A DNA stretch of 64,000 nt from Orbicella franksi (Eukaryota), in contig OZ116699.1 of NCBI GenBank assembly GCA_964199315.1, positions 22,878,001-22,942,000 of the forward strand, read 5' to 3'. The notes under the pieces are model-generated. The model worked only from the letters and a program-made list of their open reading frames with translations. It was not told the DNA's origin and searched no databases. Positions within the stretch are counted from its first letter, which is position 1, and each line of letters opens with the position of its first letter. Below, one piece after another: positions 29,975-61,970 of the stretch. Made by a program: the position numbers and the translations under genes.

Positions 29975-32556
29975 ATGGACACCCAGAAAATTTTGAAGCA
30001 ATCATTCTTAGCGGTTCTTTACATCTTAACTTTGGTAGGTAATCCTTCAATCCATGGTGACATGTTTTAAAATAGCAGAGAAAGGGACAAATTTCTCCTT
30101 ACTTAAGAAGTGAATTTTTTTGTATAGGTTACCGTTGGCTTTGGTGAGGTGAAATTTCATACAGGTAGGTTTATTAAGGGGTATTTTACAAAAATCTAAC
30201 GGATTCAATTAGGTCCTAGCTAGCTTCATTTATAGCTCTGAAATTAGACGTTTATGGCAGCCTAGAATATTGTAATCTTAACAGGCTTTGGTTCAATGCT
30301 GAGATTAACCTTGTGGCATAGGACATAACGTTTATGCAGCAAAAATTGAAATCTGTAAATCACTGCAAGGCCCTTTCCGTATCTTATAAATAACCTTTTT
30401 TCTTTGAATGTGTTGCATATAAAATAGCTTTTGATCATCATTTCCTTCGTCGGAGGGCTTTTGTAATCTCAATTAATTTTACTGTTTTCATAATTTGACA
30501 GAGGCCATCTTGGTAACCTAATTATTTCAAGGTACTGAATAACAGAAATATAATGAAAATTAATTACGCTGAACACGCCTTACTTCACTTTTAATTAAAG
30601 CGTTCGTACACATTGAACTTGGGTGTATGTTACCCCTTTTCGATGCATGTGTCTTTGCCAAAACTGTGCATGATTTAAGGAGATAACGATCGATACAACC
30701 AGGAAGTAAACCGGGGTCTGTTTGGGAAGGGACGATGCAATAATCCTATCTTGCACTGATACGACATCGCTGACCAGATTCAGCATATCTTAGCAACAGG
30801 TTCTTCGATAGACAAAAAGCAGTCTTTTTTTTTTCGCTTGTCGCAATTCTGCAGTCTCTCAGAGATCGCATTTTTACCTCCAAAAAAGCATCATGCCTAT
30901 TCTTTCCTGGAACACTAACCATAGCTTGACATACTATCGATCGAGTCGCAACTGAGAGGCGAACTGATCAGGTGTAAGAATTTCGCATTTATCAGGGTGC
31001 TTTTATTATCAGGTACCCATTTGTTTTATTACATTTCATATTGCCTTGCAATGGAAAACCAAAAGCCATGTATGCACTGTGAGATTCAGTGTTCACGACA
31101 GTTAGGTGCGAGAGGAGCATTTCCAAAAGTATAGATTGGATCATGTAGTACTTCCTGCTACATCGAATGGATTTCCTAGACCAGATAAGTTATTTTTCAC
31201 AACTGCTTTTTCAAAAAAGCTGGAAACGTTGGGCTTCTATTGAAAAATAGAACATACACATAAAGATACGCGCGTTTGAACCACACACAAAATGAAAATG
31301 TACCTATTTGATTTTCGTAAAACTTTTTGTTGGTTTGACACTCAGTAGCAGCGTCGGGTTTCCCTATTGACTACTTTAGAAGTGTCAGTCTCGGGAACCA
31401 GTGAAGTTGTCGACAAATAAGAAGAATCACAACAGCTTTTCCAACAGCTTATTTTTTTTTCTTAGGAAAAAGCTAGAAGGGGACAAAAGCGGACGAGAAA
31501 CTGCGCGGGGCGATAGTGCAACTTGCACCCTCACTTTTTAAATCCCCAATGCTTTTTATTTTGTTCGCGCCCTAGTTTGAAGATAGCAGAGCAAATAGAA
31601 AGTGTGTGAACAGACCAGAATTACAATTCTTGTTTCCAATCAAAAACCCGCCGGAAGGATGTCACTTCACATTGTCGCCATCTGAAAACGTACCCTATAT
31701 AATTAAAATCACTGGTTCATACAGTTGAAACTCAGAGAACGATTTCCCTTGAAAAGACTCGTTTTCTTTTTTTTCTAGAAATGAGAGTCCTAATCTTGGG
31801 TGGGAATGTTTTTTGAAGACCGACGCAGATTGTCGATGTTTAAATCCATTGACAACCGCTCTTTGCAAGGTTGACGACAAAACAACCGGTATACATTTTT
31901 TGTTGGTCGATGATGTTATTTCCATCCATTATTGGACGCTCTGTTGACTTGCAATGAACAGAACTGCACCACAGGATAGCAAATCATAAAAGGCTCTGTC
32001 CGGTAGTAAAAGTGGTTATAGCTGTGATGCATATTTTAATGCAAAGAAGAGAAAGCCCTTAGCATTAAACCCATCGGTTGGCTTTTGTTCTTCGCCCCAC
32101 ATTTTTAGGTTCAGTGTACAATGTGCCATTTTCGTAAATCGTTTTTCCCAAACATAGCTGTCCAAGATGATGTGCTGTACAACTTCTACAACAAAAACAT
32201 CACTACTTGGACTGACAGTGAAAAACAATGCAGAAAAGATGGAGGACGACTCGTTACCTTGGCAACCGAAAGAAAATGGAAGTTCATTACGGACGAAATT
32301 CAAAACCTTTCCAATTCAGCAGATAACGAGTGGTTCATCGGCTTGAAAACAGGATACAGTCAAAGAGAAAATTGGCAGTGGATCACTGGACAACAGTTGA
32401 CCAACCCACACTGGCAATATCACGAACCGTCAGGGGATGGGCAATGTGCGGTTATTGCTAAGGAGTACCCCAAAGGAACATACGGGAAATATAATGACTT
32501 GAGCTGCTTGGCTTCCAAAGCATTCATTTGCGAATTCGAAGTTAACACAACCACAG
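29975..32556 (+). CDS. Signal peptide + C-type lectin domain unit; model join(29975..30034,30128..30164,32158..32556); 3' continuation ambiguous
   Basis: Exons with GT-AG boundaries and matching phases (0, 1, ending in phase 1) give MDTQKILKQSFLAVLYILTLVTVGFGEVKFHTAVQDDVLYNFYNKNITTWTDSEKQC...WFIGL...WQYHEPSGDGQCAVI...GKYNDLSCLASKAFICEFEVNTTT. It has the four canonical CTLD cysteines, a WIGL-like motif, EPS and YND. An upstream acceptor ends at 29788. A candidate terminal exon 32704..32741 (GKLKTSLEKNFT*) would give a 177 aa secreted lectin. Confidence 0.85.
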
Positions 32557-33960: not shown

Positions 33961-35499
33961 CTGGTCTTAGCATGAACTGCGTAATTATTTGGCCGTTGAA
34001 GAGAAGAAAAGGAACGTGATCCGTTTTGAAATGGTCACCACATAGATAACAACCGTATTACATTGTGAGATAATGGTTTGACTTTCGTGCACTTAAATTG
34101 CTTTACCATTACATGAAAAAAAAATTACGTTCAATTGTGTTACGGAGCTATGAATAATCATATGAATAATCGACTGCCCACTACAAATCGTGACTTGCTA
34201 TCGCAATTCACGTGTTAAAAACGAAATGAACAAACGGAACAAGAATAATTCTCATCGGATAACTTTTGTGCCATAGCCACAATACATACATGGGCTGTTA
34301 TAAAAACAATACCAAGAAATGCATTACTCTAATACTTAGAATGAAAGTTGTAACAGCTTTTGCTTCAAAGGACATTGGCAATAACTTGCATTAACCACTT
34401 AAGGAAATCGATTTTAATTTGGTTGTAGATTTTAGATAACTTTGAAAAGAAAAAGAAGAAAGGCAAGAACATGACCAACCCATGAGTATTGATCTTTCAA
34501 AGTATTTGTTGTATCCATCAAGCGAGGTGATAAACGGTGTCTTAGTGTAACTCTGGCTCGTGCACGACTAATGAAGTAAACAGTCGCGGCTACAAAAGAG
34601 TTTTTTTTTTTTTTTCCTGCGTATTTCTTAATACCGTATCAAATATCTGATATATCTGACAATAGACGTTCACGGATGTCGAAATCTTTCATCAAACCTC
34701 AAGAACCAGTGATTAGAGGATGGATATTTATCGCCGTTGTCAGCGAGTAAACACAATAATTTAACAAGGTGACGTTCTGCGCTCTTAATTTCCGAGTTAC
34801 ATTTTAGTACTTAATTTTGTTTCCATTCTCTTTATCCAAGGTTGTTGACCTCAGTAATTGCATTCCATGCCTGAAATTTACCTTTAATTTTCTTTACACC
34901 ACTAGATAATTTTAAGCGACCACTATGACGCAATACTTAAAGGGCAAAATAAGAGATCTTTTGTCCAACATCTCCGTCATTCAATATCAACAGATACGAG
35001 TCAAATCAGCTTTATCTATTTTTTCTATAGCTTCACTAGTGATATCGCGCCCAAATACGATAAGGATGACGTTCTGCACACCAAAGATCGTATATAATCC
35101 ATTATTGGTTCCACAGGAGAGTTCACTAAAGATTTACGTTCAACTCTTTAATAGTCGGAGAAGTTAAAGACTTTTATAGCATCGTAGTTTAGAAGAAACA
35201 AATCAACACACAACAAGAGAGCCGTAACAGACAGTTCATTAGCACAATACTGGCTCCGTTGATGAAAAACTAACACCTTGTCACATCTTTTAAAGCCGAT
35301 TGGCTGATTGGTAGATTGACACACACTTAGTACAAATATCTAGCAGATTGACGAGCAGATGGTAGCGAGAAGCAAGGAAGAACGAAGACTGCCTATCGAA
35401 AAAAAAAAAACCCTTCATACACGTACGCATCGTGTAGCAGTAACGAACAAAAAGATTGTGTTTAACCTCAGATGAAACCTAGCAGCTCCAAGCGGGAAC

Positions 35500-38400
35500 A
35501 TGAGAAGTCCCCGTCTCGCAGTGTTCATTTTAGTGTTACAGGTCGGTAGATTATACATAAAGGGACGATAAAAGTTGAACCAAGAAAATATTTGATCTCA
35601 TGAAACCCAGTTGATTTTTTTTTGTATTTTTTTTGTAATTTCTAATAGGAGATTTTGTCCTTCTCCTTCTCCTTACCAAAAGGTAAGTGCTGTTTCTACG
35701 CAACTCAGCTACGCTGTGTCCTGGCTTCATTTGTTATTTTCCCTACATTACCTTTCCATTGTAAATGTCCTACATTGATCAATCTCTCTTTTTTTGCGTA
35801 CTGTTCGACAATATTGGCATCTTTTTCTATCATGAATTGAGTTCAAAGGCCCCTGACGGAGATAACACAGTGAAAAAATGAGAAGAAAGCGATAAATGCA
35901 AAACTATGGAAATTTACAAAATGCTGTAATTTGAGAGCTAAAAAAATAATTTGAAAATGCTGTAATTTGAGAGCTAAGAAAATTAACGACAGGTCTGCTC
36001 GATGACAACGATCATGGTAGCAAACGAAAATTTCAGCGAATTGAATATTGCGAGAAGATGAAGGCATTTTCCTGTCGTTCGGTTTTTTAATGTTTTAATG
36101 TTGAAAAATCAACAGTTTGTAATTACTTCGTCAAGACAGCGACAAGTAAAAATGTATTCCCCTTTTGAGAGGTCGTCAGGAATCGTCCGTTTTGCTAGTT
36201 TGTAGACAGACTGGAGAGTTTTTAATTACTTCACTGGAAAAGAAAATTAGAATCGGAAACGAACTACGATAGTGATTTCAATTTCTCCTAAATTGGTAAT
36301 GGCATAAATCTTGTGGATCATTTAAGCTACTCAAAAATCCAAAGCAAATCGCTACATTTACTGAATTCGGTTTAACCAAATTCTGAAACGACCCTCTTTA
36401 TATTAGCTCAGTACCTTGTAATTTTCTTTAAGGGTCAGTTTACCAAAAGAAAAAAATAGAAATAATAGTAAGAAATAATTAAAGAAACGTAACTGATGGT
36501 TCTTCCAATCTTGAAGTTTCAAACGTCATTTAACCGGAATCTTTCAGCATCGCCTGTCGCATAAACGCAAACATGTCAAGTTTAGCGGCGCAGTAATTGG
36601 GATTACACTATTAAAAACTACCTTGGAAATTCAAATTTTGAGATTACCTTGCCCATCCTTACCATATTACTGCGTTTTCAATATTCACGTTAACTTGAGT
36701 CGTAATTTTGCAGCTTTTTTAAAAGAAAAAATTGGTGAGGCCATTTTCTAATCCGAGTAAACAGTTTATTCAGTGTGCATTTTCGCAAAACAGTGGTGGC
36801 AAACTTTAAACTGTTCATAGTTGGCCGCGACTTAAAAATATTTTAAATTATTAAAACAAGCAGCAACGTCTAAATTAATTAATTTTTTTGAGATCATTTC
36901 TTATATTTTTTTCCCTATATTTATAATAATAAAAGGTATTTACTTTTTTACATTCGAAAGCTCGATTTTTAATTAAGAAGATTTCCTCTTTATCCAATCA
37001 TCGCGTTCTATTTTTTGTGAAAAGAGTTAAAATTTATCCTATACCAATACAGTTTACTGGTTAAGATAAGACTTGAAAAGCCAGACATGAAGGATAGCAA
37101 TGATGACCGCTAAAAAATGAAAACAGAATACTTTACATTGCATAGAGGAAAATGATATGTATAAAATGATTGACCATGTTCTAGTTTCTTTTCCTCTTTC
37201 ACGCAACATACATAATACAAATAATATTTCATGTTATAATAGTGGTATTGACTTTTAAAATTCAATTGTTCCAGATTCCTCGATCCCATTATCACATGCT
37301 ACACCAAAGAAAAAGATAAAGATTTTCTCGTGTAACTGGCAACAACTCGACAATATCACGAATTGACGTAAAAAATTACTTGCAGACGCTGTTCCTGTCC
37401 TTCATTGTGCTTGCTCATTTGTTTAAACATTTGTGCGCGGAGATCCTCCCTCAAGTTTTAGCATTGCATCGCCAGTTCTCGGATAACAAACGTTTGGAGG
37501 GGTTTACGGAACTGAGTTCTCCCCCTTTTAATTTTTTCCTTATGCGCAGGTCACTTGATTGTTCAGTGTAAAGCCTCGTTCAACATTACTCAGTTTATTA
37601 AAAACTGTTGCCGCTATATATACAATATGATACGACTCCAAATTAAAGTGAGTCATCCAGTGGATCTTGAAAAATGGGCGAATAGTGGAGATCATTTTTT
37701 TAACATTTCAATGACACATGACTTTTTTTTTTTTTGATGATGATTATAAAAAATGAAAATACAAATGCTTAAGGCCAAGAACAAACGAGTTAAAAGTAAA
37801 AGTATAGCAAGCCGTTGTGGTTCGTTTGCGAAAAACGAAAATGGGAAAAACTTTACGAACGCCGAGACCCGATACAGGGATGATGTTAAAGGAAACTCGA
37901 AAATGACGGTTTGATGTTGTACAAGCAAACAGAAAGCGAGAACTGCTGGTAAAGATTAGTAAGGATTGCAATGTAATCGGGCTATTAAGTATGACGCTCG
38001 CGTATGCAAATCCAGCTCAGTTTGCTTTGAAATTTTTGCAAACTCTTGCTGGAATGTTTTCTAAAACTGGTTGGAGACCCCATCAAGTGTTAAAGCCGTC
38101 TACCAATGGAAAAAAACATTACGATCTTGCTATATCTATCTTGATTACAGCAGAGTCTAATCCATTGTATAGCTTACCCACCCAAGTAACATTACACAAC
38201 CGAACCTCCTTCGGGGGACCAGTGACAGTGTCAAGCCAGGACTGGTCCCGTCCGAGAGGTCTAACCACAGCGGTAGTCGCACTGGGAGGGTTGCGCTGTA
38301 CTTTGAGTATGATACATATCACTGATAAAGCATGTTAACTATGCTCTTTTTTTAAGGAACTGGGAGTGTGTTCAGTGAACAATGGTCAGGTATTAATGGT

Positions 38401-41400
38401 ACAGCAATCAAACGCCTCACTTCGGATCCTCGCTTCCCAAACAATGCAACTAAACGTCAATATATTCCAATATTTAGAGAAAGGACTTTTGCTTCCAACT
38501 ATGGAAGTCGATACCGTTCTTATTTCCTCGCCAAGGAAACAGGCAACTACACGTTTTACACGTTCTGCGATGATTACTGTCAGGTGTTTCTGAGCAGTGA
38601 CGTCAATCCCAGAAATAAGCGGCTGATTATTGATCAGAGAAGGGCGGAAAAGGTCCCAAACGTAAGCAACTGTTGCAGGTAAAGTAGCCCATGTTCTTTC
38701 TTTAGTTTTCTCCTCAAGGTAGAGAGGTGTACTGAAAATTTCCGTGTTGCCTTGCTCTTCAAATATAAATATTTTTTACTTGACAACCATATAGCTTATA
38801 AAAGACCATGTAATGCTGGGCACGCATACCTTTCACCGGTTTTTAAAAGTCACACAGTAACTATGCTACAGAGATTTCAATTTCTATTAGTATAAATGAT
38901 CTACTGCAAGCCGTACACAATCGTCGTCTGTCTAACCATAATATCAAAGGGGATCTTCTTTTTTGGTTCGTTGGCCGAGTAAATATTGGCTTAACTGGTG
39001 TGTGCTAAATAGGAGCACTCAGCAAAATAAAAAGGATCAGGAAAGTGCCAATCACTAATCTTAATTCAATATTCTTCCCCGTCTTCCTTGAAACGATTCT
39101 CATTGATCTGACATGAAGAGGCCTTATAAATAGCATTTGACTGAACTCTGTTTTTCTTCCACTTTATTTACAGCGATTCCAAACTAAAAGATTACCAGAT
39201 TTCTCTTCCCCAAGAATTAGAGGAGACGCGACTTTATTACATGGATGTCTTGCACAAACAAGGTATAGGTTTTGCCCGGATGTACGTTGCAATGAGAACA
39301 CCAAGCGGTGAGATGAAAATGCCAATTAGCAGCGAATACTTGGTGAAACATTTAACCAAGCAAGGTGAGTAGCATCACCGAGGAAAAAAATTCGTCTCCC
39401 TAAATTGAATCTACAAAGACAACTGAAGAAAAGTTGGTGTTTTGTTCCATAGTCCAGTTTCGAGATAACTAAGACCGCTCAATAACTGAGTAGACTCGTC
39501 TGCACAGTGTTATCCTCAATCTGAAGTAAATTATTCAAAAATACCGGAACGAAAATGATAAAGGTCAGTACTTCAGGCTCTCACTTGTATTGCGAATACT
39601 TTTTCAGGCAGAGATCTGTACAGATGCGTCTCTAGTCTTTATAGTCTCTTATTCTTCATCTATATTAAATGACGTAGGTCGTGATTTCCATGTCTACGAC
39701 TACAAAAATATGGAAATTGCCAATAAATCTTATTTTGAAATGCTTTCCGTCAGATGTTCCAGGTGAGGATTGCAAAATTGAAGGAGATCCCAATTATCCT
39801 GATTACGTCAACTGCAAAGAACTTTCAGAGTCGCAAAAGGTAAGAAATTACTTAATGTATGTATCGAATTCATGGGGATCATCTCCAGGTAATGACCGTC
39901 ACTCGAGTAACAGTGACTACTTTAGTTCATAGACTGACCGTGTCTTATCGATACTGAAAGATTTGCAGTTTCGAGTTGACAATGCTGTAAGCCCTACAGT
40001 TGAATTCCTTCTTCCTTCTTGTATCGAATTTATGAGGATTATTTCAAGGTAATTACAGTCACTAGTGTAACAGCGATTGCTTTACTTCACAGACTGATCG
40101 TGTCTTATCGATACTGAAAGATTTGCGATCTCGAGTTGACAATGCTGTAAGCCCTACAGCTGAATTCCTTCTTGACACAATTACGGTAAGATATATCTCA
40201 TGATAACAGTAGATCTTTCTCAGCTATTTTATGTTAAGAGACCTGTAAATTTAAGGCTTATCTCTTTCATGCGATACATATTTTGCACACAAAAAATCTA
40301 GAAAAACTTAGTAAGAGGGAAATTTCATAAATTCCGTCGCTTAAACGGAAACAAAATTCTAATACGGCTTTTAACATGATCATCTCTTTTAAATAAAACA
40401 ACAGATGGTTGTTTTTAGAAATATCATCTCAAGACGTCCGTTTCTGCCCTTTCAGTATCAATGATAAGAACGACTACAAAGAGTACAGACCCCTATAGCT
40501 TATACTATGGTTTCTCTAACGTGCCATGTGTCAGCACTTACTAAACTTACGCATCTCATATTCAAACTTGCAATTTACTTCAGTCTTCAATAATAACGCT
40601 TTTATAGACCGCTGGGAAGAAGACAAGTGATCTTCTGGAAAGCCTTGATGATTCTGATGAAGATCGAAACGTGAGCGAATCAAACGGTGCCTTTGAAATC
40701 GCCAGAGAAGTTGAAACGCTTGGTGAAAGCATTGCATCGCGTCTCAACAACACTACTCCGGTGATAGCTGTCAGTTACCCAAGTTTAGGTAAATACTACT
40801 TTATGACTTTGTAACCTCTGTTGACTTTGGAAACATTCCAGTTTACGACAAAATATTTACGGGTGAAGATTTCAGGGTGAAGATGAAGATGGCATTATTT
40901 CGAAAACGTTTGTTTCTGTTTTTTGTTTTTACTTTTTAGCCATTTTTTAAACATTCTTAGCCTTGTGCATGTTTTGTCACAATATCAAGCGAATTTTATG
41001 GACATTGCCGTTTATACTGGAACTGAGAACGGTTATAGACCACAACAACTGTTGTTCTGGTTCGTAAATATCACATTCCTCAATTTCATTGGGCAATATG
41101 ATAGATAACAAAATTGTTCTATCAGAAGGTGTCACTTTTACACTCATTCAACTATCAACAAAAGGAGAGATCGAACTCTTGATAACTTGCTACAAAGGTA
41201 GTTGTTTAGCTCTAGGTTTGCTATCGTTGTTTTCCAATGCAATTCCGTTCTCCGTAATCCAGTCATGTAGGTCGTGTCGGCACGTTACGTTTCAACCACA
41301 TTTAAAAACGATCTTCCCATCTTACGCCTTCCGGTCTCATGCATTGTAAGGATTACCGATATAATAACAGGGGGAGGGCTGGGAATCCCATGTGAAAAGA

Positions 41401-44400
41401 TCAGAAACGCTTGTCGGAAAATTTGAATCAAACCCGTAAAGGAGACCAATCTAGGCGTGGCTCGACCTCTCTAAAAGGTTCCACTTTAAAATGAACTTGA
41501 CAGCATTTCTCACTATTTCTTCGAGAGCAGTTCTAAAAGATACCTTGGCAGCTAACAAATAGCGGCGTTTAGTTTTAGATTCTAAATGAAACTCAAATCT
41601 GAGATTTACAGACCTAATCGTATATATAACAAAATTCTCGATCGTGATTGGTTTTCCGCGCGCCTATTTAGTACGTAATCGGCGCGCGATCACGTGGGTG
41701 TCCAATTACAGGTATCCAATTTGAACTTATTGCAATTGGATACCGACGTGATTCGCACGTCAATTACGCGCTTTAATGGGTTCCTTCGCAACAATTCCTG
41801 CAGTTTTCAAAACTTATGAAAAGCGCTAAAGACGTTTTCGCTCCAAAGAAGTTTTTAAAAGACATTTCTAATTCCGAAATTTGTTATAGATACGATTAAT
41901 TCGTAATAGGACCTCGTGTCGTACAATTTAGGTAGTAATCACGCGATTACTCCCTGAATTGCATTTCACTCAGTCCAGTTACTATTACTAAGCGAAAAGA
42001 CGACCATCCCCGACGTTTCTACACGGAAGTCCTAATTTACCTCCCTGTCCCCGTTCAAAGTATTACAAAAATAATGGTATTATTCATGCGTTGTTAATAT
42101 TGGCAATACGACATCTACAGAAACACAAAGTCGCTACGTTTCTATTTTGAAAAAGACAGACGTTCATTGTGATTCAGTTTAAAACAATACTTGTTATTCT
42201 CTCTTTCGTTTCAGATATGAAAGCATGCTATGGAGAGCTAAACGCTTCTTTTGATGGCGCTACTTCTCCCACAGAAAACAGCATTACAATTTTGCCAGGA
42301 AATTCAACGCAAAATCTGGAGTTATACAACGGTACGTTTTACTCTTCAAATTCCAGGTAACGCCCAGAAAGCACAAAAATGTGTCAAGTGAATTCTAACT
42401 TGATTAATACCTGAAAGCGCATTGCATTGGAACGATGACCTCTATTCTTCACATTTCTTTACCCTAGGAAACAATAGTTTTTATGCGACAAAAACATTCT
42501 TGGAAGATCGCTCTGTAAGTCTAAAGTTGTAGTGAGCTACATCTGATTACACAGTATTCTGATCTCGTGTCATCGGCGCCACAGGAAAGGCGCGGTTTTT
42601 TGCAGCCTTTTACAGGACATTGGGCGACGAGGTGCAAAACAACATCAGCCAAGTATACAGGTGGGTAAATAGTATTAATCATATGTGAAGTTTTTTTCCC
42701 GAAATTGCTGGAGCTTACTACATTCACATTAATATGTTTGAGGCAATATATCAAACACGAGAGACAGCGTTTCATCGGGAAATCCAAACACCGAGAAGAG
42801 AGCTGAGCTGAGCAGCGGAGTATTTTTGCCGAAATTCGAGGTTAAAAGGACGTATTTGTATTTTCCAAGAACTATCGCCGACTGGAACTGCCTCACAAGG
42901 AGATAGTTACCTCTACTTCCTTAGATTCTTTCAAATCCAATCTGTCAACTGTTTTATAGTAATTCTTTTAGATTCACTTAGTGTTTTCATTATCTATTCA
43001 GGGTGTCTAGCAGCATGGTTGTTCACAAATTTAAAAAAAAAAAAAATGGAAACTCATGATGGAAAAAATAAGAAAAATAGGAACTTTCTCTCAAAAAATA
43101 GGAAAATCAATGCTACTTTGATGGAAAAAGATATAGTTAGTTCTCATTGTGATAACAACATCAGTTTGTTTAACAATAGATTTTAAATAACAAATAATTG
43201 AAGGGCAATCGGCAATCATTTGTCAAATTGACATTTGAATATTTTCTTAGAAACAACACCAGTGATTCTACAATGAATTCCTCAATTCGAATTCCCTGGT
43301 TTTAACAGTTCTTTAAAACAACTGAACTAGCTTTTGAGAACTTTAACATGAAACCAGCAGATAATAGCAAACACAGCAAATCCTTAGTGAAGGTTAAAAA
43401 CAACAGTTCACTCTTTGCTTCGCATAAAACGACAGTTCACCCTTAATTTGACTTTAAAACGTCAGTTCTACAATAATTATTTGACTTTAAGACAATAGTT
43501 AACCTTAAATATATGGCGTAACAACGACGGTTGACCCTTAATTTGACCTCTTTTTCTTTGAAGGAGAAGCAGAAATTTGGTAGAGCTTTTTCCATTAGAT
43601 AATCAGATATCTGTACGTGAGGAACAGTTCAGCGTAAGGACATATATGGATACCTAATGTATTTTCAATGGGTTAATGCAGAATATCATCTGTTGACTTC
43701 AACTTGGTCAACTGAACTACATTTATAAGACTAGTAGATACAATAGGAGCAGTAGAAAATCATTGACAATATGGTTCAAACAGTAAATCTAAGTTATGAC
43801 CACAAATCCAATAAGCAAAAGTGAGCAAAGAATTAATTACTGTCGTTAACATTTTTGTTGATTTAGAACATCAAAGACATGACAGCAATTGCTTTATGCT
43901 AAATCTAAATCTGAAACACCCGAGGCCCCAAATCCATTTTAATTTTGTAACACACTCTGCTTAATCAGAAAAAAAAAAAAGAAAAAATAGGTTTCATTTA
44001 AAAAAAAGGAGAAGATAGGAATCTACTCAAAAACGATGATAGCAAAAAATAGGAACTGGACACCCTGTTAATATTTTTTAACCGTTTTTACAGCCGGTAT
44101 GTTGTCTTGGGATTTTACCAGCTCAACCTATACAGATATAGATGTTAATAAAAAAGCTTAGGTTATGCATACAGCAGTGAAATCATTGGTGTATTTTATC
44201 CCAGTGGCAATACATCTAGTCAGCGGATCCCGTATTACCTGAACAGCAGGATTATATCAGGGTCGGTAATTCATGCTGCAAACGAGTCCTTCCATGGTGA
44301 TGTTTACATTCGACTAGAACACACCAAGGTATGTAAATAAACAGAATGCTTTCTTTCTTAACAACATTTTAACCTGATGTCAACGCACGATTTCTCTTTA

Positions 44401-47400
44401 CCATTTCAATGCATTCACAAACCCCTAGTTGGGAGACAGGCTATGTATCATTTATTCGTCGCGATTTTTCTCAGTTCCATCTACATTCACGCGCGGCGTT
44501 GTATGAAAAAAAAAAAAAAAATTGACTGCGTTTTGAGCACACTCAACATGAAAAAGGAAAACACGCAAATTAAAAATTGTTTAATTTTGGAACGCTGGTG
44601 TCACCCTCCTTCAAACATGCTGGTCAGAACGGCGAGATGCGAAACACAGCAGACAGTAGTAATAGCTGTGTTTTTTAATTTGATATTACGATGAAGCTGA
44701 CCTGCCTAGCAATGACAAGATCGTCAGTCCCGTCAGAAAATTGTGAACGAATGCTTTGTTCAGCCGGAACATTTAGCGACTATGTTGGGTTAATAGGGTT
44801 TACTTAAAAAAAAAAAAACGAAGAAAAAACCACAAACAGCTTACCATTTCTAAATCTTTGCTAAAACGATGAAATCCTTGTTCTTATTAGTTCAGCAGCT
44901 CCGACAAGATGGCAATGGAGTGTGCTTTTTGGCGATACACGAACAGGTGAGATATATGACAAAAATAGTGACAGACAACTGATTTATTACTACATACCTT
45001 GTAATTTAAATCGACTCCCTAAATTACTGTGTGACAATAAAGACAGCCACAATAGTTATTGATTACTTCCACAAAGCAAAAATTGCTTTTTTTGCGCAAG
45101 AAACCAAGATTATAGTAAAGGTAGTATACACTCCACGGGAGAATGTTTGCTTCGTGTACCACCATGCACATCAGACGGTTTGGAGATGGTTTGCTGCGTT
45201 ATGTTTCGCCGTGTTCGATGCAGAAACAGGAAAGAAATGTGGCAAAGATTGTGAAAGAAAACTGACTTATTGCTTTATAACTTGTAATTTATATCAGCTC
45301 CCTAAATTACTGTTTGACAACAAAGACACAGCGCCAGTATTTTTTAATTACTCTTACGTAAAAAAATTACTTTCTTGCGCAAGAAACATAAATTATAGTG
45401 CAACATATGTTCCACGACAGATGATTTACAACATGTGCCGCCATTTTACCTCAGTGTCACTCGATTCATCGTATGACGTTAACCTGAGGAGCATTATCGT
45501 GAAGACTTTGTTTCATTTCTAGTTAAGAGTGCTAAAATTGTAAGTTTCTGCCTTCGCTCCTAAACTGATGATATGCACCACGTACACTAACAGAAATATA
45601 TTTGAAGAATTTTTCAAGGGAGGGCAAAATGTATTTCTTCTAAGAATCAAATTAGCTTGTATTATGTTTTTTTCCAACCGGGATAATCAGACCTTTATAA
45701 ATCACTCCCTGTGAATATCACACCACGTGACGCCTACCACTTAACTCGAGGCCATTTTTTATTATTATAATTATGGTTGTGTAAAATAGCGTCTAACATT
45801 TTTACATTTATTCTCTGGCTTGTCACTGTTTGACTAATACATTTTTTGCTGCTTCTCTCTCTCGCGATCCATATTCAGCGCATCTCTTAGTTTCTCGAAT
45901 AAGGCTCCCTCCCCTATTTGTGGTATTATTTGAGCCCTTCACTTATAACTGAATTTTTTTTTTCTGTACAGCTGAGCGAAGCGAAAGAGAATAGAATTGG
46001 ATTTATTTTCAGTGATTTTTGAACGACATGACGACAGAATTTGAAAGCGACCGCCAGACGTTTTGAATTTGAGATTAAAGCTTAGCAATTGCGTAACTCT
46101 TGATAAAATCCCTTTTAGACTGTTTCCGTGTACTAATATAAACGAAACAATTTCCGTCAACGCAACCTCCGTCTTTTGGATTTTGACTTTTCAAAGTCAT
46201 ACTCATCAATGACAACAATCACCGTCAAAAAATGAAAACTTTTTTTTTTTTTTCACTTTTTTAGCCCCCATGTAGGCAATCCTCATTTCTTACCGCACTA
46301 GTTGGAAGATAATAATTTTCACTCTCTTCGCACTTCAGAAAGAAAAGAAAACAGAATAGAAAACATAGATATTTTAGAAACGTTTATTATCACTAACAAC
46401 AAGGATTGATAGTACTTTTACTGTCTTGGTGGACGATCTATTTCAGGTGATTGTACACTAACAAGAGAAAATCAGGGGACAGAGAGGGAAACGCCCTACC
46501 CTTGGGATATGTTAATTTTAGTTAAGTTATTTTTAAATGTCACAGAAACGGAAATCAGTTTCCCGAGACATCCGCAAAGTTAGCAGGCGCGCTTAATCCA
46601 ATGAAATTCAAAATGGTGTTGCGCGTGGAATTACGCTTTGTTTCCTCTTTTTCTCTTGACGCCAATGTTAACTCTAGTGATCAATATTTCTCGTTAGCTC
46701 GACTAGTAATTCGACAGGCCACTGGTCTACTGATGGATGCTACAAAGACGAGAAGCTGTCGAATGATCAAGCTACTGTGTGTCGCTGTAATCACCTGACA
46801 CACTTTGCTGTTCTTATGAGAGTTACTGATGATGACAAGGTGAACACAACGAATTTCAAACATGATACGTGCATAAAACGTAGTGCTGGTAGTACATCTA
46901 ATTTGTACTCAAGAGCGCAGAACTTCTGGTAACTTCCGTGTAACTCGTCAGAATGAATCCAACTACTAACGAACACTTTGCAATGTTATGCTCTACGCAA
47001 CAATATCATCTATTAGTATGATTCTACTAGTTTACTAATGCAAATGCTGCAATCTGATTGGCTGAGCTACTCGTACACTATCAGCCATTAGTGTGCAATG
47101 GCTGGAGGTCGTCAGCAAAATAACGAAGTTTTCTCGTTTTTGCGAAGTAGTACGATGAACATTTAGATACAAATGGATAATTAAATTCCTGAGAAGACTA
47201 AAAGATGGATTTCGTGACTTTAAAAAACTACAAGATATTAAGAAGACTGATGAGCGCGCGTACACAACAGGAAATGCAAAACGACAATTCAGTCTGCGCG
47301 ATGTTTCTAAAGCGTAAAATTAAATACAGTGTACAAAAGCAATTTGAAATGGTAACCTGAAGAAAATTTAAGTAAGAATTCTACTAAAACAATTAGATTA

Positions 47401-50400
47401 TTCGCTCTCGATTTCTATGGGGTGATAATTGATGAGGCCGAAGGCCGAGTATAAATCTCGAGCTCATAATCTAATTGTTAATGAGAGAACAAAGTTATTT
47501 TTTTCTGAAGAAACAGATGGGCAGCGTCGACGGGCAAGTGAAATGTTTAGCTGTTTATCAACTTGAAGCTGATAAAGGTATGTTAATCGACGTAAAGAGT
47601 TTAGGAAGCTAACTTTGTATCGTTAGACCTTTGTCAGAGCGAAATCACTTTGCGCATGCCATGGCATGGGCTAACGCTACGATCACGCAACAGCAAAACA
47701 CTTACCTTTATCAGCTTCAAGTTGATACATAACTAAGAAGCAACGTCTAGTTTCGTTATTTCTTTGCTTTTTTTAAGTTGGTATGTATATTTGTTTTCTT
47801 CAAGTTTTTTGTTTCCTTTAACAAATAAAGGATATGAAACATTTCGCTTTCCTCGAGAGAAAAGATTTCAGTGATTTTTTTTTTTTTTTAAATCAAAACC
47901 ACAATTATTTTAAGCGGTTTATGGTACACGAGGTATTTACTTGCATAGGTCACCAAGCCAGGTGAGGAACACATTCAAGCCTTGGAAATGATCACATACG
48001 TCGGTTGCGGTTTATCCCTACTGGGCGAGGCTCTTACTATTATCACGATCACTTTCCTTAAGTAAGTAAACTAAACACCTTGGAAGTTATCTGAGACTAT
48101 GTAGAATAGGAGATGTCTTTCTCCAAGTTAGTTGTTGTGAATGAGAATTAAACCTAAAGGAACACCTGCCAACGACTTAGAAGAGGCAGAAAAGAAGCAA
48201 ATATTCCGGGAGTGTATTCATTTGGCATTTTGAACCAACAGTTTACATAGTACAAGTTATTTCCATAATTTCACTTATTGTGAGAGAGCATTGCGGCGGA
48301 AGGTCTATTGTCATCCGCTGCGCGCGCAGAAGTTGTTGCACAACCTCGCGAAGTACAACATTTCTATTTGTATCAATTTGTATTTTCCTCTACAGGTTGA
48401 CTAGAACAGAGACAAGTATCATTCATCTAAACCTTGTTTTAGCATTAGCAGTCGCTCAGATTGTGTTTCTTACTGGAATTGAGGCCACGCAAAATAAGGT
48501 GATTTCAACGTTTTACCATTTTGAAACATTTTTGCTCAACTATTCACACGCTAAGACCCTGAAAACTTAATACCACGTGATCATTCATTTTGGTTTGCTC
48601 GCCTACTAAATAAATTTTTTAACAATTAAATCAAGAATGCCGAAACCACAAAGAGAGTCTCCATCTTTTTTTCTTCTAGTTTTAGTAAGAAATGTAACCA
48701 ACGCTTTACCTTTAACTCGTGGAAGTCGAAATTCACATTTTTCTATCTGTTTAATTCCATCAGGCAGCTTGCAAGATCGTGGCCGTCCTTCTACATTACT
48801 TTAACTTAGTCTCGTTCAGCTGGATGTTAATCGAGGGGGTCTGGCTCTACGTTATGATCGTTCGAGTCTTTGAGACCGGACACAGCAGAATAAAGAAATA
48901 CTGCGCATGTGCTTGGGGTAAGGTACCCTGCATGCTAAAGAAAATAATCTGTTCCGTCGTCTTACGCTTTTCATAATCAAGCCTACATTTGAATTCTCTG
49001 TCATTTTCTGTCACACTCTGCTTACTTGTTAACTGTGATAATGTAATGACGTAAGGTTAGTGCCTTGCCTGACTAATCGGTAAGGCTAGTTCTGTGAAGA
49101 ACTCATCTTCAAATCCATGAATTACCGTTCTTTAAATCAATCAATCTCATTATAAATTGACTTGACGTAAGTTTCCTGCGGTGGAAAATAACCTAACCGT
49201 TTTGTAGGGATTCCAGGTTCAGCTTTTAACCTGCGACTTCAAAAAGAAATGCGTGGATGACAGTGAAACATTATTGATTTTTACTTTAAATTGGAATCAA
49301 CAGGAATTCCATTTGTATTTGTTGTCATCACATTATCAGCAAGTTTTGACGGCTATGGAACAGACACAAGGTCTGTATATATCCGATGTGTCATTAGTTA
49401 AACGTTAGTAGACTTATGTCTTAGTGGTTCGCTGGCTGGTTGGTTATAGCTTACCGCCTAGCTGAAACAAATGTGGATGATCGATTACATGGCGGATCTA
49501 TACGTGCTCGCCGAGAGGTGAGAGAGAGTGAAGGCGTGACGTTTCGGATCCTTGGTACCTTCTCCTGGTTCCGCCACCCCCCTGTATTCAACGCCTAGGT
49601 GGTTAAAAGTTTGCAACAAACCGCGTTCTGGTTATTGTAACTCCGGTTGCGTTTTATATCTTAGCGCCTTTTCTTGTTATTTCACAGTTGCTGGTTATCT
49701 GTACAGAAAGGAACCATTTGGAGTTTTGTAGTGCCAGTTCTTCTTATTGCACTGGTAAGAGAAAACCGATTTCAATCCGGTTGTATTTTTGTCGAGAATT
49801 TCCAACTGACAGTAGACCTAACGGTAACGTTACGTTCATTATTTTTTGCAGGTAAATTCAATCATACTTGGTATGGTTGTGAAAGAGATACTAAGATTGA
49901 ATCATCCAACGATGGGAGACGACACTAAATATCAGTCTGCAAGGTAGGCGAAGAATGTAGCGACCGCGTTTTCTACGGAAGAACAATGTCATACTGGTTG
50001 GTTTCAAAAAAGTAAAAGAAAAATATCAAAATTACAGAAAAGCTGTTGAAAAGCATCAGTTAAATGAACCAATGTTGCTATATTAAACAAAACTTCAATT
50101 CTCGTCGTTTGACTAGACTCTAATGGGAAATGTTGATTCGCATTTTTGAGTCTTAAAGGCGAAAGATCAAAATATATGCAACTACACTAAAAAAAATGAT
50201 GAAACAAAGAAAATAAATACAGTAAAAAGCTAACAAAACCCTTAATTGCATTCATCTTAGTTTCATTCAGGATTTGATTCTAAAGACTCACGTCTGCTGA
50301 GTCTGACGTTTCTTCAATAAGAAATAAAGACCTCATTCATAGTTAATTCGTAAAGAATACAGTTCCCTGACTTCCTGTAAGTAACAAGCCTGTGTTTTTA

Positions 50401-51483
50401 ACCTGACAGGTCAGGTGTTCAATCAGCCGTTGTGCTGTTACCTTTACTGGGGATCACGTGGCTGTTTGGAATATTGACGTTCAACAGTGACACGCTTGCT
50501 TTCCAGTATCTCTTCGCTATTTTTAACTCGTTGCAGGTTTGTAGATAAGTTAACATTGTGGGACTGGCTACAATTGTGGGCTGATGTGTTATATTTAAAG
50601 GTGTAATTTGTTGCATCTAACGAGATCACATATTACGAAAAGAAATACTCATAAAAAGTCCAGTGTCATTTCTTAGGTGGTTAAATTAAAATTTATATTT
50701 CCTGCTTTTAGGGATTCTTTATTTTCCTGTTTCATTGCCTTCTCAACTCAGAGGTGAGTAATGAAATTTTACACAGTACTTCTTAAGCATGCAAAATGAA
50801 AAACGCCCTCTATTGTCTGAACTTCCCATGCCATTGCTATTTGTAGGTGAGACGGGCGTTCAACAGGAAAAAGAAGATTTGGACCGAAACACACGACTTG
50901 TTTCAGACCAATTCACTGTCACCTCAGAACTACAATGATCTCTCCAAAGAAACTCTCTCCACTGGAAACGGAAGCGGGGTAACTATACTTTAATTATTAA
51001 GGCCTATGTGCCATGAGGCTCGAGGATAGGTGACTAGTCGAAGCTACAGCGACATGACCTATATTTAGCGTTCACGTAAATAAGCAGCAACCACGAAGAA
51101 ATGTCAACTGGCCTTATCCGCATTTGTATTAATGAGGTACCAGAGTACTGTTGAAGATACTTGACATAATAACGGAGACTTTGATGAACTAGTTTTCTTA
51201 CTGCCAGAGATGGTAGGCCAGGAAAAGGGTAGCAGTACCCCTAAATGGCAATAAAACCGTAATGATAACTTCAGTCGTAACATGAAACATGAAGAGATCT
51301 CTCAGCGTCATTCATATTTAAGGACAAGGAGACAGAAAATAAAGAAGCTTGACCAAAGAGATTGCCACTTAAGTCAATTGGTCGGTTCTTTCAGTCATTG
51401 TTAATGTACATTGGTATTTTGTTTTATTTTAGCGGCCGGGTTCAGCAGTTTCTGCTTTTTCCAATGCACCACAGAGACCATGA
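35500..51483 (+). CDS. Adhesion GPCR (ADGRL/ADGRD-like 7TM) with signal peptide, PA14, GAIN/GPS and 7TM; 22 exons, 803 aa
   Basis: Model join(35500..35541,35649..35682,38357..38678,39174..39364,39754..39839,40093..40185,40608..40788,42215..42331,42585..42660,44205..44328,44891..44946,46698..46839,47949..48061,48396..48498,48764..48917,49304..49370,49688..49754,49852..49943,50410..50536,50712..50753,50847..50978,51433..51483) = 2412 nt. All introns are GT-AG and the phases are consistent. Motifs: signal [22 protein letters not shown]; [14 protein letters not shown] and [10 protein letters not shown]; GPS CAFW...WSTDGC...[13 protein letters not shown]; 7[37 protein letters not shown]...[32 protein letters not shown]. 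The 42585 and 44205 acceptors and the last exon are the least certain. Confidence 0.9.
35918..35985. repeat. Two-copy 36 bp tandem repeat
   Basis: AAAATGCTGTAATTTGAGAGCTAA starts at 35918 and at 35954. Confidence 0.9.
38357..39364 (+). other. PA14 domain-encoding exon pair of the adhesion GPCR (38357..38678, 39174..39364)
   Basis: ...[35 protein letters not shown]...[37 protein letters not shown] fits the PA14 pattern (NYGxRxxGYxxxxxxGxYxFxxxxDDxxxxxL ... YYxExxxKQxxG). Confidence 0.8.
39888..40185 (+). repeat. Tandem duplication (~160 bp period) of an acceptor plus most of aGPCR exon 6
   Basis: 39933: ACTGACCGTGTCTTATCGATACTGAAAGATTTGCAGTTTCGAGTTGACAATGCTGTAAGCCCTACAGTTGAATTCCTTCTT. 40093: ACTGATCGTGTCTTATCGATACTGAAAGATTTGCGATCTCGAGTTGACAATGCTGTAAGCCCTACAGCTGAATTCCTTCTT. 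The ~45 nt of intron in front of each copy is also similar. Confidence 0.92.
41370..42045. mobile_element. Composite of interspersed repeats, probably one MITE-like repeat nested in another
   Basis: The left part (GGGAATCCCATGTGAAAAG...GAGATTTACAGACCTAA) and the right part (CTAAGCGAAAAGACGACCATCCCC) resemble the two halves of one repeat, which is partly related to ATGTGAAATGGGCGGGGATGCCTCTCGTC at ~15900. They are separated by a different repeat (~41625-41990, TTCTCGATCGTGATTGG...TTACTATTACT). Family recognition is from memory. Confidence 0.45.
42853..42944 (+). mobile_element. 5'-truncated L2/CR1 LINE 3' end
   Basis: Translates, with one 1-nt frameshift, as [30 protein letters not shown], the typical FFPRTIxDWNxLP...SLxSFKxxL terminus of CR1/L2 ORF2. 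Confidence 0.75.
42999..44067. mobile_element. Non-autonomous DNA transposon (~1.07 kb) with 12 bp terminal inverted repeats, possibly hAT-like
   Basis: The left end CAGGGTGTCTAG matches 11/12 the reverse complement of the right end CTGGACACCCTG. AAAAATAGGA motifs cluster near both ends. No clean target-site duplication. Confidence 0.7.
45000..45420. repeat. Diverged ~135 bp direct repeat pair, period ~283 bp, intronic
   Basis: TGTAATTTA.ATC..CTCCCTAAATTACTGT.TGACAA.AAAGACA...TTGCGCAAGAAAC..A.ATTATAGT at ~45000 and ~45283. Confidence 0.85.
46698..46839 (+). other. GPS autoproteolysis motif and tethered-agonist (Stachel) exon
   Basis: [26 protein letters not shown]|THFAVLMRV has an intact H-L-T consensus and the conserved Cys/Trp residues. 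Confidence 0.93.
47020..47485. mobile_element. MITE-like interspersed repeat
   Basis: Perfect 14 bp internal inverted repeat AACAATTAGATTAT (47388-47401) / ATAATCTAATTGTT (47466-47479), plus a CAATCTGATTGGCT motif. Similar layouts occur at ~10275-10515 and ~59600-59895. Confidence 0.6.
47556..47727. repeat. Perfect 25 bp inverted repeat enclosing ~120 bp
   Basis: TATCAACTTGAAGCTGATAAAGGTA (47556-47580) / TACCTTTATCAGCTTCAAGTTGATA (47703-47727). Confidence 0.9.
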
Positions 51484-60100: not shown

Positions 60101-61970
60101 TTGCAATAAAAACCTAATTACAATTAAATTATAGAAGTAGACAAAACTAAGCCCTCTGTCCAACCCGCAAACAGTTAAATTGAAATCTGCTTGACTGTAA
60201 TTCAAGTTCAACCAAACATACTCATATACTAGCTCGAATGACTATCTTTTAAGTTTGTCTACAACTTCAAACTGCCATTTTTAAGACCTTTTTCCTACAC
60301 TGTACATAACAATTCTCAAACTGAGCATTACTCACCCTTCTAAGAGAGCCATAGCTTCCATCCTCAGACAAATGAACTTCAAAAGTGAAATTTACTTTGT
60401 CTGCCAATCGATTTAACAGATCCATACAAAAACCTGCAGGAAAATTTGATGCAATAAGTGTTTCTTGATATCATTTCTATGAAAGGAGAGAAGATAGATT
60501 TCTGGATGAAAATCTCACTTACCATAACAGCAGTGATCATTCTGGCTTGAATCCACCATCTTGGCATGTTCACCATACACTTTTCCAGAGCATTTGATGT
60601 GCTTCTGTTTCTTCTCAGGATCATCAAGATCTTCACAATTGCCACTGGCAGGTAAAGACTTGATGAAAACAAACGGCTCACCCACCAAGGTCACCACCTG
60701 CAAGAAGAAATCAAAAGAAATTTGAGAAAAGTTGCCAGAATTTGGTGGTACGTCAAGAAAATATCACCAGTTGATGTTTTTCAATTAAATTCATAATTGA
60801 AACCTACCCTCAAATTAGTAGAAACAAAGATTCCTTTTGGCTTTTCATCTTGACCCCCTGGCCAAAAAACTGTTTTGGAAATTGCCACATTCCCATCACG
60901 ATACTCTCCAACAACTGTAAGCTGTGTATCAGCCTTCTTCCTCAGGTTGACGATCTGATAAACAGCATTGATACGATCACCTTTTCTGTTCAGCATGATG
61001 TTACCGGTCTTGCCATCAACAAGGGTGGTATTCACAAGTTCCCTAAAAACACAATTAAAAGTTGTTAGTAAAAGTGAAGAACAGCCCCCAGAAAAATAAG
61101 ATTGTAGCCAACTGTCTCCCAACAAAAAGCTAACGGTTGGTAAACAATTGGCCAACAAATGGCTGACAGTCATTTGAAAAATGGCCAACTGTTGGTCAAA
61201 AGTTGACCGATCAGGTTTTCAAACATTAACAACATTTATCGCAAACATGTTAGTCAGCAGTTGGTGATTTGTTGATGAATTTTTGGCCAGCCATCAGTAA
61301 TTGATCAGAGTTTGCAAATCTGACGATTCAAGGATCCACCCTATCATCAAAGCCAACTGCTCTGACAAATGGTGCACATATAAAATGTCAGCTTTTACAA
61401 AGCCACTGTGGCAGTTGATTTACCTTTATCAACCTCAAGTTTACAGTGAGGTGTTTCACTTACCTGCCAACTCAGCCTAACAGTTTCTCAAGAAACCAAC
61501 AACTTTGCTCACTCAATTTTTGACAATTCAAAAACAGATTTTTTTATTCACATCATTTACTAACAATGACACATGCGAGTGAACTCTCTCCACAACAGAC
61601 TCATTTGGGAGACTTGGCAGTTCTAGATGTCTACTTTGAAGAGCATTCAATAGCAGATCAGCTAGTGAAATTCAGCTGAGTCCAGCTAAACTGCACCATA
61701 ACATGGTGTCCATTTTGGGAGAGTTGACTCATGTTGGTTTCTAAAGGACAGAAAATGACAAAAGGAGACAGATGGCAACATTATTTTAAGACACCCACTT
61801 GAACAAAATTGGACCACTGTCCCACTGTGTGGTTTCTCGGCAGCTGGCAGTGGGTGGAGACAAGGACTCCCCTGCAGCCACCAGCCTGTCAAGGGCTGTT
61901 GCAACCAGCTTCACAGCATCCTGGACCTGAGATGATTCATTATCATGAAGTAATCGCATTCCAATGGCAC
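54129..61970 (-). CDS. GRIN1: NMDA-type glutamate receptor subunit GluN1 orthologue; 5'-partial (most of the amino-terminal domain lies beyond the window)
   Basis: Model complement(join(54129..54424,54805..54955,55400..55520,56173..56330,57377..57525,58050..58281,59167..59331,60336..60433,60523..60697,60808..61042,61799..61970)), all GT-AG and phase-consistent. GluN1-diagnostic motifs: [131 protein letters not shown]. Confidence 0.97.
55185..55365. mobile_element. Palindromic MITE-like repeat in a GRIN1 intron
   Basis: TGATCATCGCAGTTATAC...TTAAGCAATTGTGA pairs imperfectly with TCACAACTGCTTAAG...GTATAACTGGAATGATCA. Confidence 0.65.
58393..59118. repeat. ~720 bp compound tetranucleotide satellite (GACT/GACG/GATG/GACA/GGCA/GATT units) in a GRIN1 intron
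   Basis: Recurring higher-order blocks such as GATTGACGGACTGATGGACTGACGGGCA; it generates the spurious S/V/Q/P-rich ORFs in the track. Confidence 0.93.
59600..59895. mobile_element. MITE-like interspersed repeat in a GRIN1 intron
   Basis: Perfect 17 bp inverted repeat TTAGTATCACCCAACTA (59682-59698) / TAGTTGGGTGATACTAA (59875-59891). Confidence 0.65.

Follow-up and report, generated by a model that had tools for sequence, protein, structure and literature searches.

A coral adhesion GPCR with a PA14 ectodomain and putative Ca2+-dependent glycan sensing

A 64,000-nucleotide stretch of the genome of the coral Orbicella franksi (contig OZ116699.1, positions 22,878,001 to 22,942,000; hereafter the window) was analysed around a receptor gene on its forward strand, which runs from an ATG at 35500 to a stop codon ending at 51483. 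The gene has 22 exons and encodes an 803-aa G protein-coupled receptor of the adhesion type (aGPCR) with, in order, a signal peptide, a PA14 domain, a two-Cys hairpin, a GAIN domain with its GPS, and a 7tm_2 domain. On balance, it is probably the scleractinian orthologue of a hexacoral class B2 aGPCR with an ectodomain made of lectin modules and a putative role in Ca2+-dependent glycan sensing. A sequence-only reading of the same DNA had proposed a complete 803-aa model with a signal peptide, PA14, a Cys-pair linker, GAIN, a GPS at HL|T and the Stachel THFAVLM, and all of these elements were recovered down to their coordinates.

To build the gene model, orthologue-guided tblastn was combined with an enumeration of GT-AG introns scored against the Oculina protein, and the result was then corrected with splice joints from RNA-seq. 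Four polyA runs were mapped to 35400-41399, of which two (X23 and X24) were informative, at a depth of 1-3x and with a listing threshold of three reads. Five joints were present in the raw reads (35541>35649, 35682>38357, 39364>39754, 39839>40093 and 40185>40608), and a sixth was indicated by a loose end after 40788 that spells the first 30 nt of the exon at 42215. A first model of 21 exons and 793 aa, with a direct join from 35545 to 38357, was dropped when the RNA joints revealed a 34-nt micro-exon, which raised the length of the model to exactly 803 aa. As the series 39364>39754>40093>40608 was read from RNA, the PA14 exons are spliced to the linker and GAIN exons. In other corals, complete orthologues of 800-807 aa are encoded on intron-free transcript contigs of 2.9-7.6 kb. 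The receptor gene is real and transcribed, and its PA14 and GAIN/7TM (seven-transmembrane) exons form one transcription unit. The window protein itself is absent from the protein collections, where the closest entry is 68% identical.

Two further open frames, 40887-41346 and 46045-46209, were considered as GAIN exons and rejected for want of orthologue support. A 160-bp tandem duplication has copied the first GAIN exon (direct repeat 39860-40013 and 40020-40173, 88% identical), and the upstream copy, 39933-40049, still has both splice sites (AG acceptor, GT donor) and an open frame. Its use as an additional or alternative exon was considered too and rejected, since all nine junction reads skip it (39839>40093). 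In runs X21 and X22, 50-70 reads covered 35616-35799 and 37600-37721 at an identity of only 95-99%, all of them with loose ends at 35616 and 37721; those over the former interval carried a fixed G>T at 35624. They look as though they stem from other, transcribed copies of a repeat that sits in intron 2 and lies outside the receptor mRNA.

By sequence, the receptor is assigned to the class B2 aGPCRs on its 7tm_2 domain, a GAIN fold modelled by proxy on an orthologue, and a GPS with H-L|T and the Stachel THFAVLM. The GPS is intact (CRCNHL|THFAVLM, with H473, L474 and T475) and matches Pfam GPS with E = 9.1e-14 on the exon alone. The H, T, L and M of the motif and tethered agonist are invariant in the family alignment. 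Autoproteolysis and tethered-agonist signalling are predicted from the intact GPS and Stachel. The single exon 48764-48917 matched 7tm_2 with E = 3.4e-15, and seven hydrophobic segments were found in the window protein. Its 7TM region is 92% identical to that of the Oculina orthologue, whose own 7tm_2 match takes in positions 3-250 of 250 (7e-62). The Cys-pair linker, DVPGEDC...YVNCK, occupies aa 197-218. Matches to Pfam GAIN were weak in the orthologues; an AlphaFold (AF2) model of the linker and GAIN of the Oculina orthologue (73% identical to the window; predicted local distance difference test, pLDDT, 78.8) matched the GAIN structures of BAI3, BAI2, CD97, ADGRL3, CIRL1, CELSR1 and GPR126 (E = 4e-13 to 2e-8).

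Judged by phmmer, a family profile and the fold model of an orthologue, the ectodomain is a genuine PA14 domain despite Pfam scores below threshold. A phmmer search with the PA14-like exon against 1.8 billion representatives gave 3749 hits with E<1e-3, mostly multi-PA14 proteins according to sampled hits checked by Pfam. An 885-aa Nematostella protein with two PA14 domains, GAIN, GPS and 7tm_2 was among them. When a profile of 18 family members was compared with solved structures, the best matches were RsgI 6qdi (1.4e-5) and Cea1 (1.8e-4), followed by RsgI3, Flo1/5, anthrax PA and Epa9. Pfam run on separate exons cannot fairly score a domain split between two, and the Oculina orthologue was used for whole-domain scans. 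The AF2 model of the Oculina PA14 (70% identical to the window domain; pLDDT 91.1) matched Cea1A, Lg-Flo1, Flo5, Epa9, RsgI and MpPA14 in the PDB, with E ~1e-7 to 4e-5 and template modelling (TM) scores of 0.55-0.69. Against PA14 models in the AlphaFold DB the TM scores were 0.8-0.88, and the top match was the Nematostella receptor A7SV49. The Nematostella orthologue passes the Pfam PA14 threshold with 58.6 bits; the scleractinian orthologues are without a PA14 annotation because their scores fall below it. The sequence-only reading had offered the PA14 assignment to be checked by profile and by AlphaFold. The profile check was divided, Pfam staying under its threshold and phmmer and the family profile matching PA14 proteins and structures, and the AlphaFold check was borne out for its fold part, on the Oculina orthologue.

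In published structures, the sugar site of PA14 is formed by an Asp-cis-Asp (DcisD) pair together with an Asn or Gln that calcium-binding loop 2 contributes (PMC6852018, PMC8092209). The loop-2 role is filled by Gln in C. thermocellum RsgI3 (Q130) and in MpPA14 (Q156) (PMC6852018, PMC8092209), and a Tyr two residues before the loop-2 Asn stabilises the cis peptide in PA14 lectins (PMC6852018). In the window protein, TFCDDYC spans aa 94-100, within exon 38357-38678, and its Asp-Asp pair is D97-D98. In HMMER alignments, the C-D-D of the family coincides with V-D-D in Flo and with I-D-D in Cea1, which is the DcisD position. At the same alignment level, Q162 (in H-K-Q-G-I-G-F) falls on the loop-2 Asn of Cea1. 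The spacing from D98 to Q162 is 64 residues, compared with 63 from D161 to N224 in Flo5. In the orthologous clade, the Asp-Asp pair is invariant (11 of 11 rows) and Gln or Asn is kept in nine of the 11. The sequence-only reading had pointed out the adjacent Asp-Asp of TFCDDYC, and the pair does lie where Flo5 and Cea1 have their DcisD. Its use as a lectin signature had to be qualified: Asp-Asp is a general feature of PA14 and is weak evidence alone, and the triad with Asn or Gln is the stronger signature. That triad is present in the window PA14 and marks a putative Ca2+ site, its residues being placed by alignment only; at the position of the stabilising Tyr the match fails, as described below.

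A search with the whole 885-aa Nematostella protein was swamped by bacterial PA14 proteins, and orthologues were recovered with the 7TM region of the longer Nematostella form as the query. Orthologues of ~800 aa were found in Desmophyllum, Oculina, Pocillopora, Stylophora, Montipora and Acropora, and others of ~910-930 aa in the anemones Actinia and Actinostola. Collinear orthologues were present in at least 10 species, and every hexacoral examined had an orthologue. They carry automatic names such as ADGRL2/3/4-like, ADGRD1-like and CD97-like, with the NCBI names spanning L1-L4, D1 and E5/CD97. In a maximum-likelihood tree of the GPS and 7TM region, the window protein grouped with the scleractinian receptors (99/98), and the anemone orthologues formed their sister group (97/98). 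On this phylogeny, the gene is assigned as the scleractinian member of a receptor clade conserved in stony corals and sea anemones (Hexacorallia). RBL, olfactomedin, HormR and pentraxin/LamG (Laminin_G_3/PTX) domains were searched for with Pfam in the window exons and in ten orthologues and none was found, so the architecture agrees with neither of the automatic labels, 'D1-like' or 'L-like'. Among octocoral, hydrozoan, hemichordate and mollusc relatives returned by the 7TM-region search, which was not exhaustive, PA14 was not seen.

A separate clade of the same tree (99/98) contained receptors of ~950 aa with CBM_14 and PA14. This genome has such a paralogue on the same contig as the window, 4.5 Mb away (C2:27477852-27489000, minus strand), which is the orthologue of an Acropora protein with CBM_14 (chitin-binding), PA14, GAIN and 7tm_2. 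Across the whole genome, PA14-like matches numbered at least 44, and clustered intronless open frames of 350-450 aa held many of these. Two clusters, at C10:14.45-14.81 Mb and C6:10.6-11.2 Mb, hold many of their matches in single frames of this size, and in a third, at C1:9.85-9.97 Mb, the frames are ~100-160 aa. The clusters suggest that PA14 proteins have expanded into a larger family in this coral, one that lacks introns at least on C10 and C6; the PA14 module is common in this animal.

A second isoform, of a predicted 932 aa and with a predicted promoter further upstream, is probably made from the locus as well; it adds a C-type lectin domain (CTLD), and the 803-aa form is probably just one isoform of the gene. 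Exon 32158-32556 encodes a complete Lectin_C domain (E = 3.9e-16, profile positions 4-107 of 107) with EPS and ND at the usual Ca2+/sugar positions, and its identity to the N-termini of the Pocillopora, Acropora and Montipora isoforms of 939-954 aa is 53-56%. A signal exon, 29975-30038, was found by tblastn of the 939-aa Pocillopora protein, which starts MDDQNILKKSF. Both exons end in phase-1 donors (TAG|GTAATC and CAG|GTAACA, respectively), the latter phase-compatible with the acceptor at 38357, and joining the two to that acceptor gives an open frame of 932 aa with the CTLD followed by PA14. Isoforms of ~800 and ~940 aa are both annotated in Acropora, Montipora and Pocillopora (cluster listings), and the 939-954-aa forms carry Lectin_C with E = 5e-18 to 3e-17. 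Lectin_C was also matched in the 1098-aa X1 isoform of Nematostella (1.6e-11) and, together with PA14, in the Actinia orthologue (1.4e-9). A search with the N-terminus of the long Pocillopora isoform returned four proteins.

The closest system on record is Nematostella XP_048578568 / A7SV49 ('adhesion G protein-coupled receptor L4 isoform X2'/'predicted protein'), in which PA14, Cys hairpin, GAIN/GPS and 7TM follow one another as in the window protein. The two proteins are 62% identical in the 7TM and 41% in PA14, and the C-D-D-x-C motif is common to both. The Nematostella protein has two tandem PA14 domains above the Pfam threshold, whereas the short isoform of the window has one, which Pfam misses. 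Actinia tenebrosa 'ADGRL2-like' belongs to the same orthologous clade (97/98) but combines Lectin_C with one PA14. Among vertebrate proteins, ADGRD1/GPR133 was the best match of the window GPS and 7TM (43-46% identity, E ~1e-72 to 1e-77). As predicted for the window receptor, ADGRD1 has a cleavable GAIN domain and a tethered agonist, of the TNFAILM type; unlike that receptor, ADGRD1 has a pentraxin/LamG-like ectodomain (PF13385), and in the tree the cnidarian PA14 receptors lie outside the chordate ADGRD1 clade. With a 7TM nearest to ADGRD1 but no Laminin_G_3/PTX domain and no nesting in that clade, the receptor is not a member of the ADGRD subfamily. Nor is it a latrophilin (ADGRL), having no RBL, olfactomedin or HormR domain; insect Cirl is 37-39% identical to the window 7TM.

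Outside the aGPCRs, the PA14 lectins Flo5, Flo1, Epa1/6/9, Cea1 and MpPA14 have in common with the window PA14 the beta-sandwich fold, the DcisD Asp-Asp and the loop-2 Asn or Gln, as far as model and alignment indicate. The fungal adhesins and MpPA14 are cell-wall or RTX adhesins without a signalling module and are only 9-16% identical to the window family. The flanking cysteines C96 and C100 are specific to the cnidarian family, and where the fungal and bacterial adhesins have a cis-stabilising Tyr the window has His. Clostridial RsgI (6qdi, 6qe7) was the top sequence-profile hit and had the lowest root-mean-square deviation (2.6-2.7 A) to the Oculina PA14 model. In RsgI, a PA14 polysaccharide sensor is coupled to an autoproteolytic juxtamembrane domain and a signal crosses the membrane (PMC6852018, PMC10328401). 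RsgI would thus be a close functional analogue of the proposed PA14 receptor, the likeness being one of analogy and not whole-system homology: RsgI is bacterial and single-pass, its autoproteolytic domain is unrelated, and its output is sigma-factor release, not G-protein activation. For a lectin fold at the tip of an aGPCR there is precedent in the latrophilins, which have a rhamnose-binding-lectin domain of a different fold, and in the Lectin_C aGPCRs of molluscs and hemichordates among the 7TM-search hits.

Full-text literature searches found no paper describing a PA14 aGPCR, the only co-occurrences being a domain table and a bacterial RsgI paper. The architecture itself is already in public databases under misleading automatic names (A7SV49, with Pfam PA14, GPS and 7tm_2) and appears unstudied. 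The suggestion in the sequence-only reading that no PA14-aGPCR has been characterised therefore stood as regards publications and fell short as regards databases, where A7SV49 and the hexacoral orthologues were already deposited. Its statement that PA14 is not a canonical aGPCR module agrees with the 2026 aGPCR consortium review, in which 'PA14' does not occur within the first 300,000 of 412,533 characters. Expression data for the orthologues were sought in symbiosis studies, and nothing usable was found.

If the receptor senses glycans, its PA14 site, and in the long isoform also the CTLD, would hold a Ca2+ ion that ligates the vicinal hydroxyls of a sugar. Seawater contains ~10 mM Ca2+. The sugar would be borne by a surface that is itself anchored (for example chitin, mucus or the wall of a microbe or alga), and attachment to it would fix the N-terminal fragment. 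Movement or shear would then pull the fragment off the cleaved GAIN domain, or shift it, which would free the tethered agonist to activate the 7TM and a G protein, perhaps Gs by analogy with ADGRD1.

Several results weigh against this reading. On exon 38357-38678, the Pfam scores were 17.7 bits for PA14 (cut-off 24) and 21.4 bits for GLEYA (cut-off 26.2), and in every scleractinian orthologue, scanned at full length, PA14 scored 13.7-21.6 bits against the same 24. The PA14 and GAIN folds were modelled on the Oculina orthologue, a proxy 70-73% identical to the window protein. The cis-stabilising Tyr of Flo5, Epa1 and RsgI is His160 here and Y, F, H, L or I among the orthologues. Cea1 has Phe in this place, so the stabilising Tyr is not universal among PA14 lectins. 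The paralogue clade shows DN or NY in place of the Asp-Asp pair, and in one Nematostella PA14 the Gln is replaced by Ala, so the Ca2+ site is dispensable in the wider family. Given His160 and the degenerate paralogues, the presence of Asp-Asp and Gln does not prove a functional site. The sequence-only reading had depended on the 38-39 kb exons being spliced to the GAIN exons; RNA-seq joined them to the linker and GAIN, and the joint within PA14 (38678>39174) stayed below the three-read listing threshold in X23 and X24. The junction 32556>38357 of the long isoform was not seen in these runs either. The G-protein preference is a possible extrapolation from the 43-46% identity to ADGRD1, and glycan binding, the link to symbiosis, cleavage and signalling of the family are what we infer, as plausible, from sequence.

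The points at the putative sugar site bear on a rather unlikely alternative, in which the receptor is real and PA14 serves as a protein-binding or structural module, its Asp-Asp and Gln being either empty or occupied by a structural Ca2+. What the receptor senses would in that case be a protein ligand or mechanical load alone, as with most aGPCRs that have been characterised. The PA14 fold does occur in proteins without shown sugar binding via the site (anthrax protective antigen and glycosidase insertions among the hits), and the unconserved Tyr position, the tolerance of DN and NY among the paralogues and the low Pfam scores, which amount to strong divergence from the characterised PA14 lectins, all fit such a module. 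Less easily fitted are the conservation of the Asp-Asp pair and, in most rows, of Gln or Asn across the coral-anemone split, the repeated combination of the domain with carbohydrate-binding modules (Lectin_C in the long isoforms, CBM_14 in the paralogue), and the sugar-bound lectins that are its top structural matches.

Two other alternatives concern the gene and not the site. That the PA14 exons at 38-39 kb come from a separate secreted-lectin gene, the architecture being an artefact of the gene model, is highly improbable and close to refuted. The RNA joints lead from the micro-exon into 38357 and from 39364 through the linker into GAIN, the loose end after 40788 reads the next GAIN exon, both PA14 exons together make one domain, and the architecture recurs both on the intron-free contigs of other corals and in collinear orthologues. 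For a separate gene there is the shallow RNA-seq, which listed neither the joint within PA14 nor reads spanning from the first PA14 exon to GAIN, and the upstream lectin exon, which shows alternative 5' structures at the locus. A real if lesser possibility is that the 803-aa form is minor and that the locus mainly yields the long CTLD-PA14 isoform, or else a soluble lectin encoded by the upstream exons; two different lectin folds in tandem, instead of PA14 alone, would in that case make up the functional ectodomain. The window retains an intact and phase-compatible pair of signal and CTLD exons, and Lectin_C occurs in the annotated isoforms of Pocillopora, Acropora, Montipora and Nematostella (X1) and in the Actinia orthologue. 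All five reads that enter 38357, however, come from the 35682 micro-exon, with no loose end there, which is weak evidence against this possibility at the depth of these runs.

Mosaic ectodomains are the defining feature of the aGPCRs, of which only a minority have a known natural ligand. For partner choice and microbe sensing in corals, a standing model is lectin-glycan recognition, and we know of no signalling receptor that has been tied to it. The PA14-aGPCR family is a candidate for such a receptor. A broader proposal, which we hold to be doubtful, is that hexacorals have an ancient pair of glycan-sensing aGPCRs that turn Ca2+-dependent sugar recognition into a G-protein signal, one switched by promoter between PA14 and CTLD plus PA14 and the other, the paralogue, built on CBM14 plus PA14. 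If this were true, these receptors could be the missing transducer from lectin-glycan recognition at coral-microbe and coral-alga contacts to a second-messenger response of the host. A PA14-tipped aGPCR also offers a cheap hypothesis, namely Ca2+-dependent sugar binding that would rest on D97, D98 and Q162, and Nematostella, which has an orthologue, is genetically tractable. As Pfam misses the scleractinian PA14 and the NCBI names come from unrelated vertebrate subfamilies, censuses of domain architecture undercount the family. The receptor is not a new kind of system, being one more module on the known aGPCR scaffold.

Table 1. Exons of the receptor gene and of its predicted long isoform, in coordinates of the window.
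Feature	Position	Strand	Evidence
Exon 1 of the 803-aa isoform, start of signal peptide	35500-35541	+	RNA joint 35541>35649; match to N-terminus of Oculina orthologue
34-nt micro-exon, remainder of signal peptide	35649-35682	+	RNA joints 35541>35649 and 35682>38357
PA14, N-terminal half, with D97-D98	38357-38678	+	phmmer; sub-threshold Pfam PA14/GLEYA; RNA joint into 38357
PA14, C-terminal half, with H160, Q162 and calcium-binding loop 2	39174-39364	+	Orthologue and Cea1 profile alignments; RNA donor 39364>39754
Two-Cys hairpin linker	39754-39839	+	RNA joints at both ends; Nematostella and Actinia conserve it
Unused duplicate of the next exon	39933-40049	+	Direct repeat; skipped by RNA reads
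GAIN subdomain A, helix 1	40093-40185	+	RNA joints 39839>40093 and 40185>40608
GAIN subdomain A helices	40608-40788	+	RNA joint into 40608; loose end after 40788
GAIN exon	42215-42331	+	Orthologue-guided splice model; first 30 nt equal RNA loose-end consensus
GAIN exon	42585-42660	+	Orthologue-guided splice model
GAIN subdomain B exon	44205-44328	+	Orthologue-guided splice model
GAIN subdomain B exon	44891-44946	+	Orthologue-guided splice model
GPS exon, CRCNHL|THFAVLMRV, predicted cleavage site L474|T475	46698-46839	+	Pfam GPS E = 9.1e-14
TM1-TM7, first four of eight exons	47949-48061, 48396-48498, 48764-48917, 49304-49370	+	GT-AG, chosen against Oculina orthologue
TM1-TM7, last four of eight exons	49688-49754, 49852-49943, 50410-50536, 50712-50753	+	GT-AG, chosen against Oculina orthologue
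Cytoplasmic tail, two exons including stop codon	50847-50978, 51433-51483	+	Orthologue-guided splice model
Predicted alternative first exon of the long isoform, signal peptide MDTQKILKQSFLAVLYILTLV	29975-30038	+	tblastn of Pocillopora protein
C-type lectin domain exon of the predicted long isoform	32158-32556	+	Pfam Lectin_C E = 3.9e-16

Elsewhere in the window, two intronless genes for rhodopsin-type GPCRs lie upstream of the receptor gene, at 12573-13862 on the plus strand and 20455-21612 on the minus strand (7tm_1 E = 1e-48 and 2e-42, respectively). Downstream, a 200-aa open frame of degenerate repeats at 58479-59152 (minus strand) lies in low-complexity tandem repeat DNA with raised GC and skew. 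An open piece at 60781-61188, also on the minus strand, has a weak ANF_receptor match (E = 0.004) and may be an exon of a neighbouring minus-strand receptor gene.

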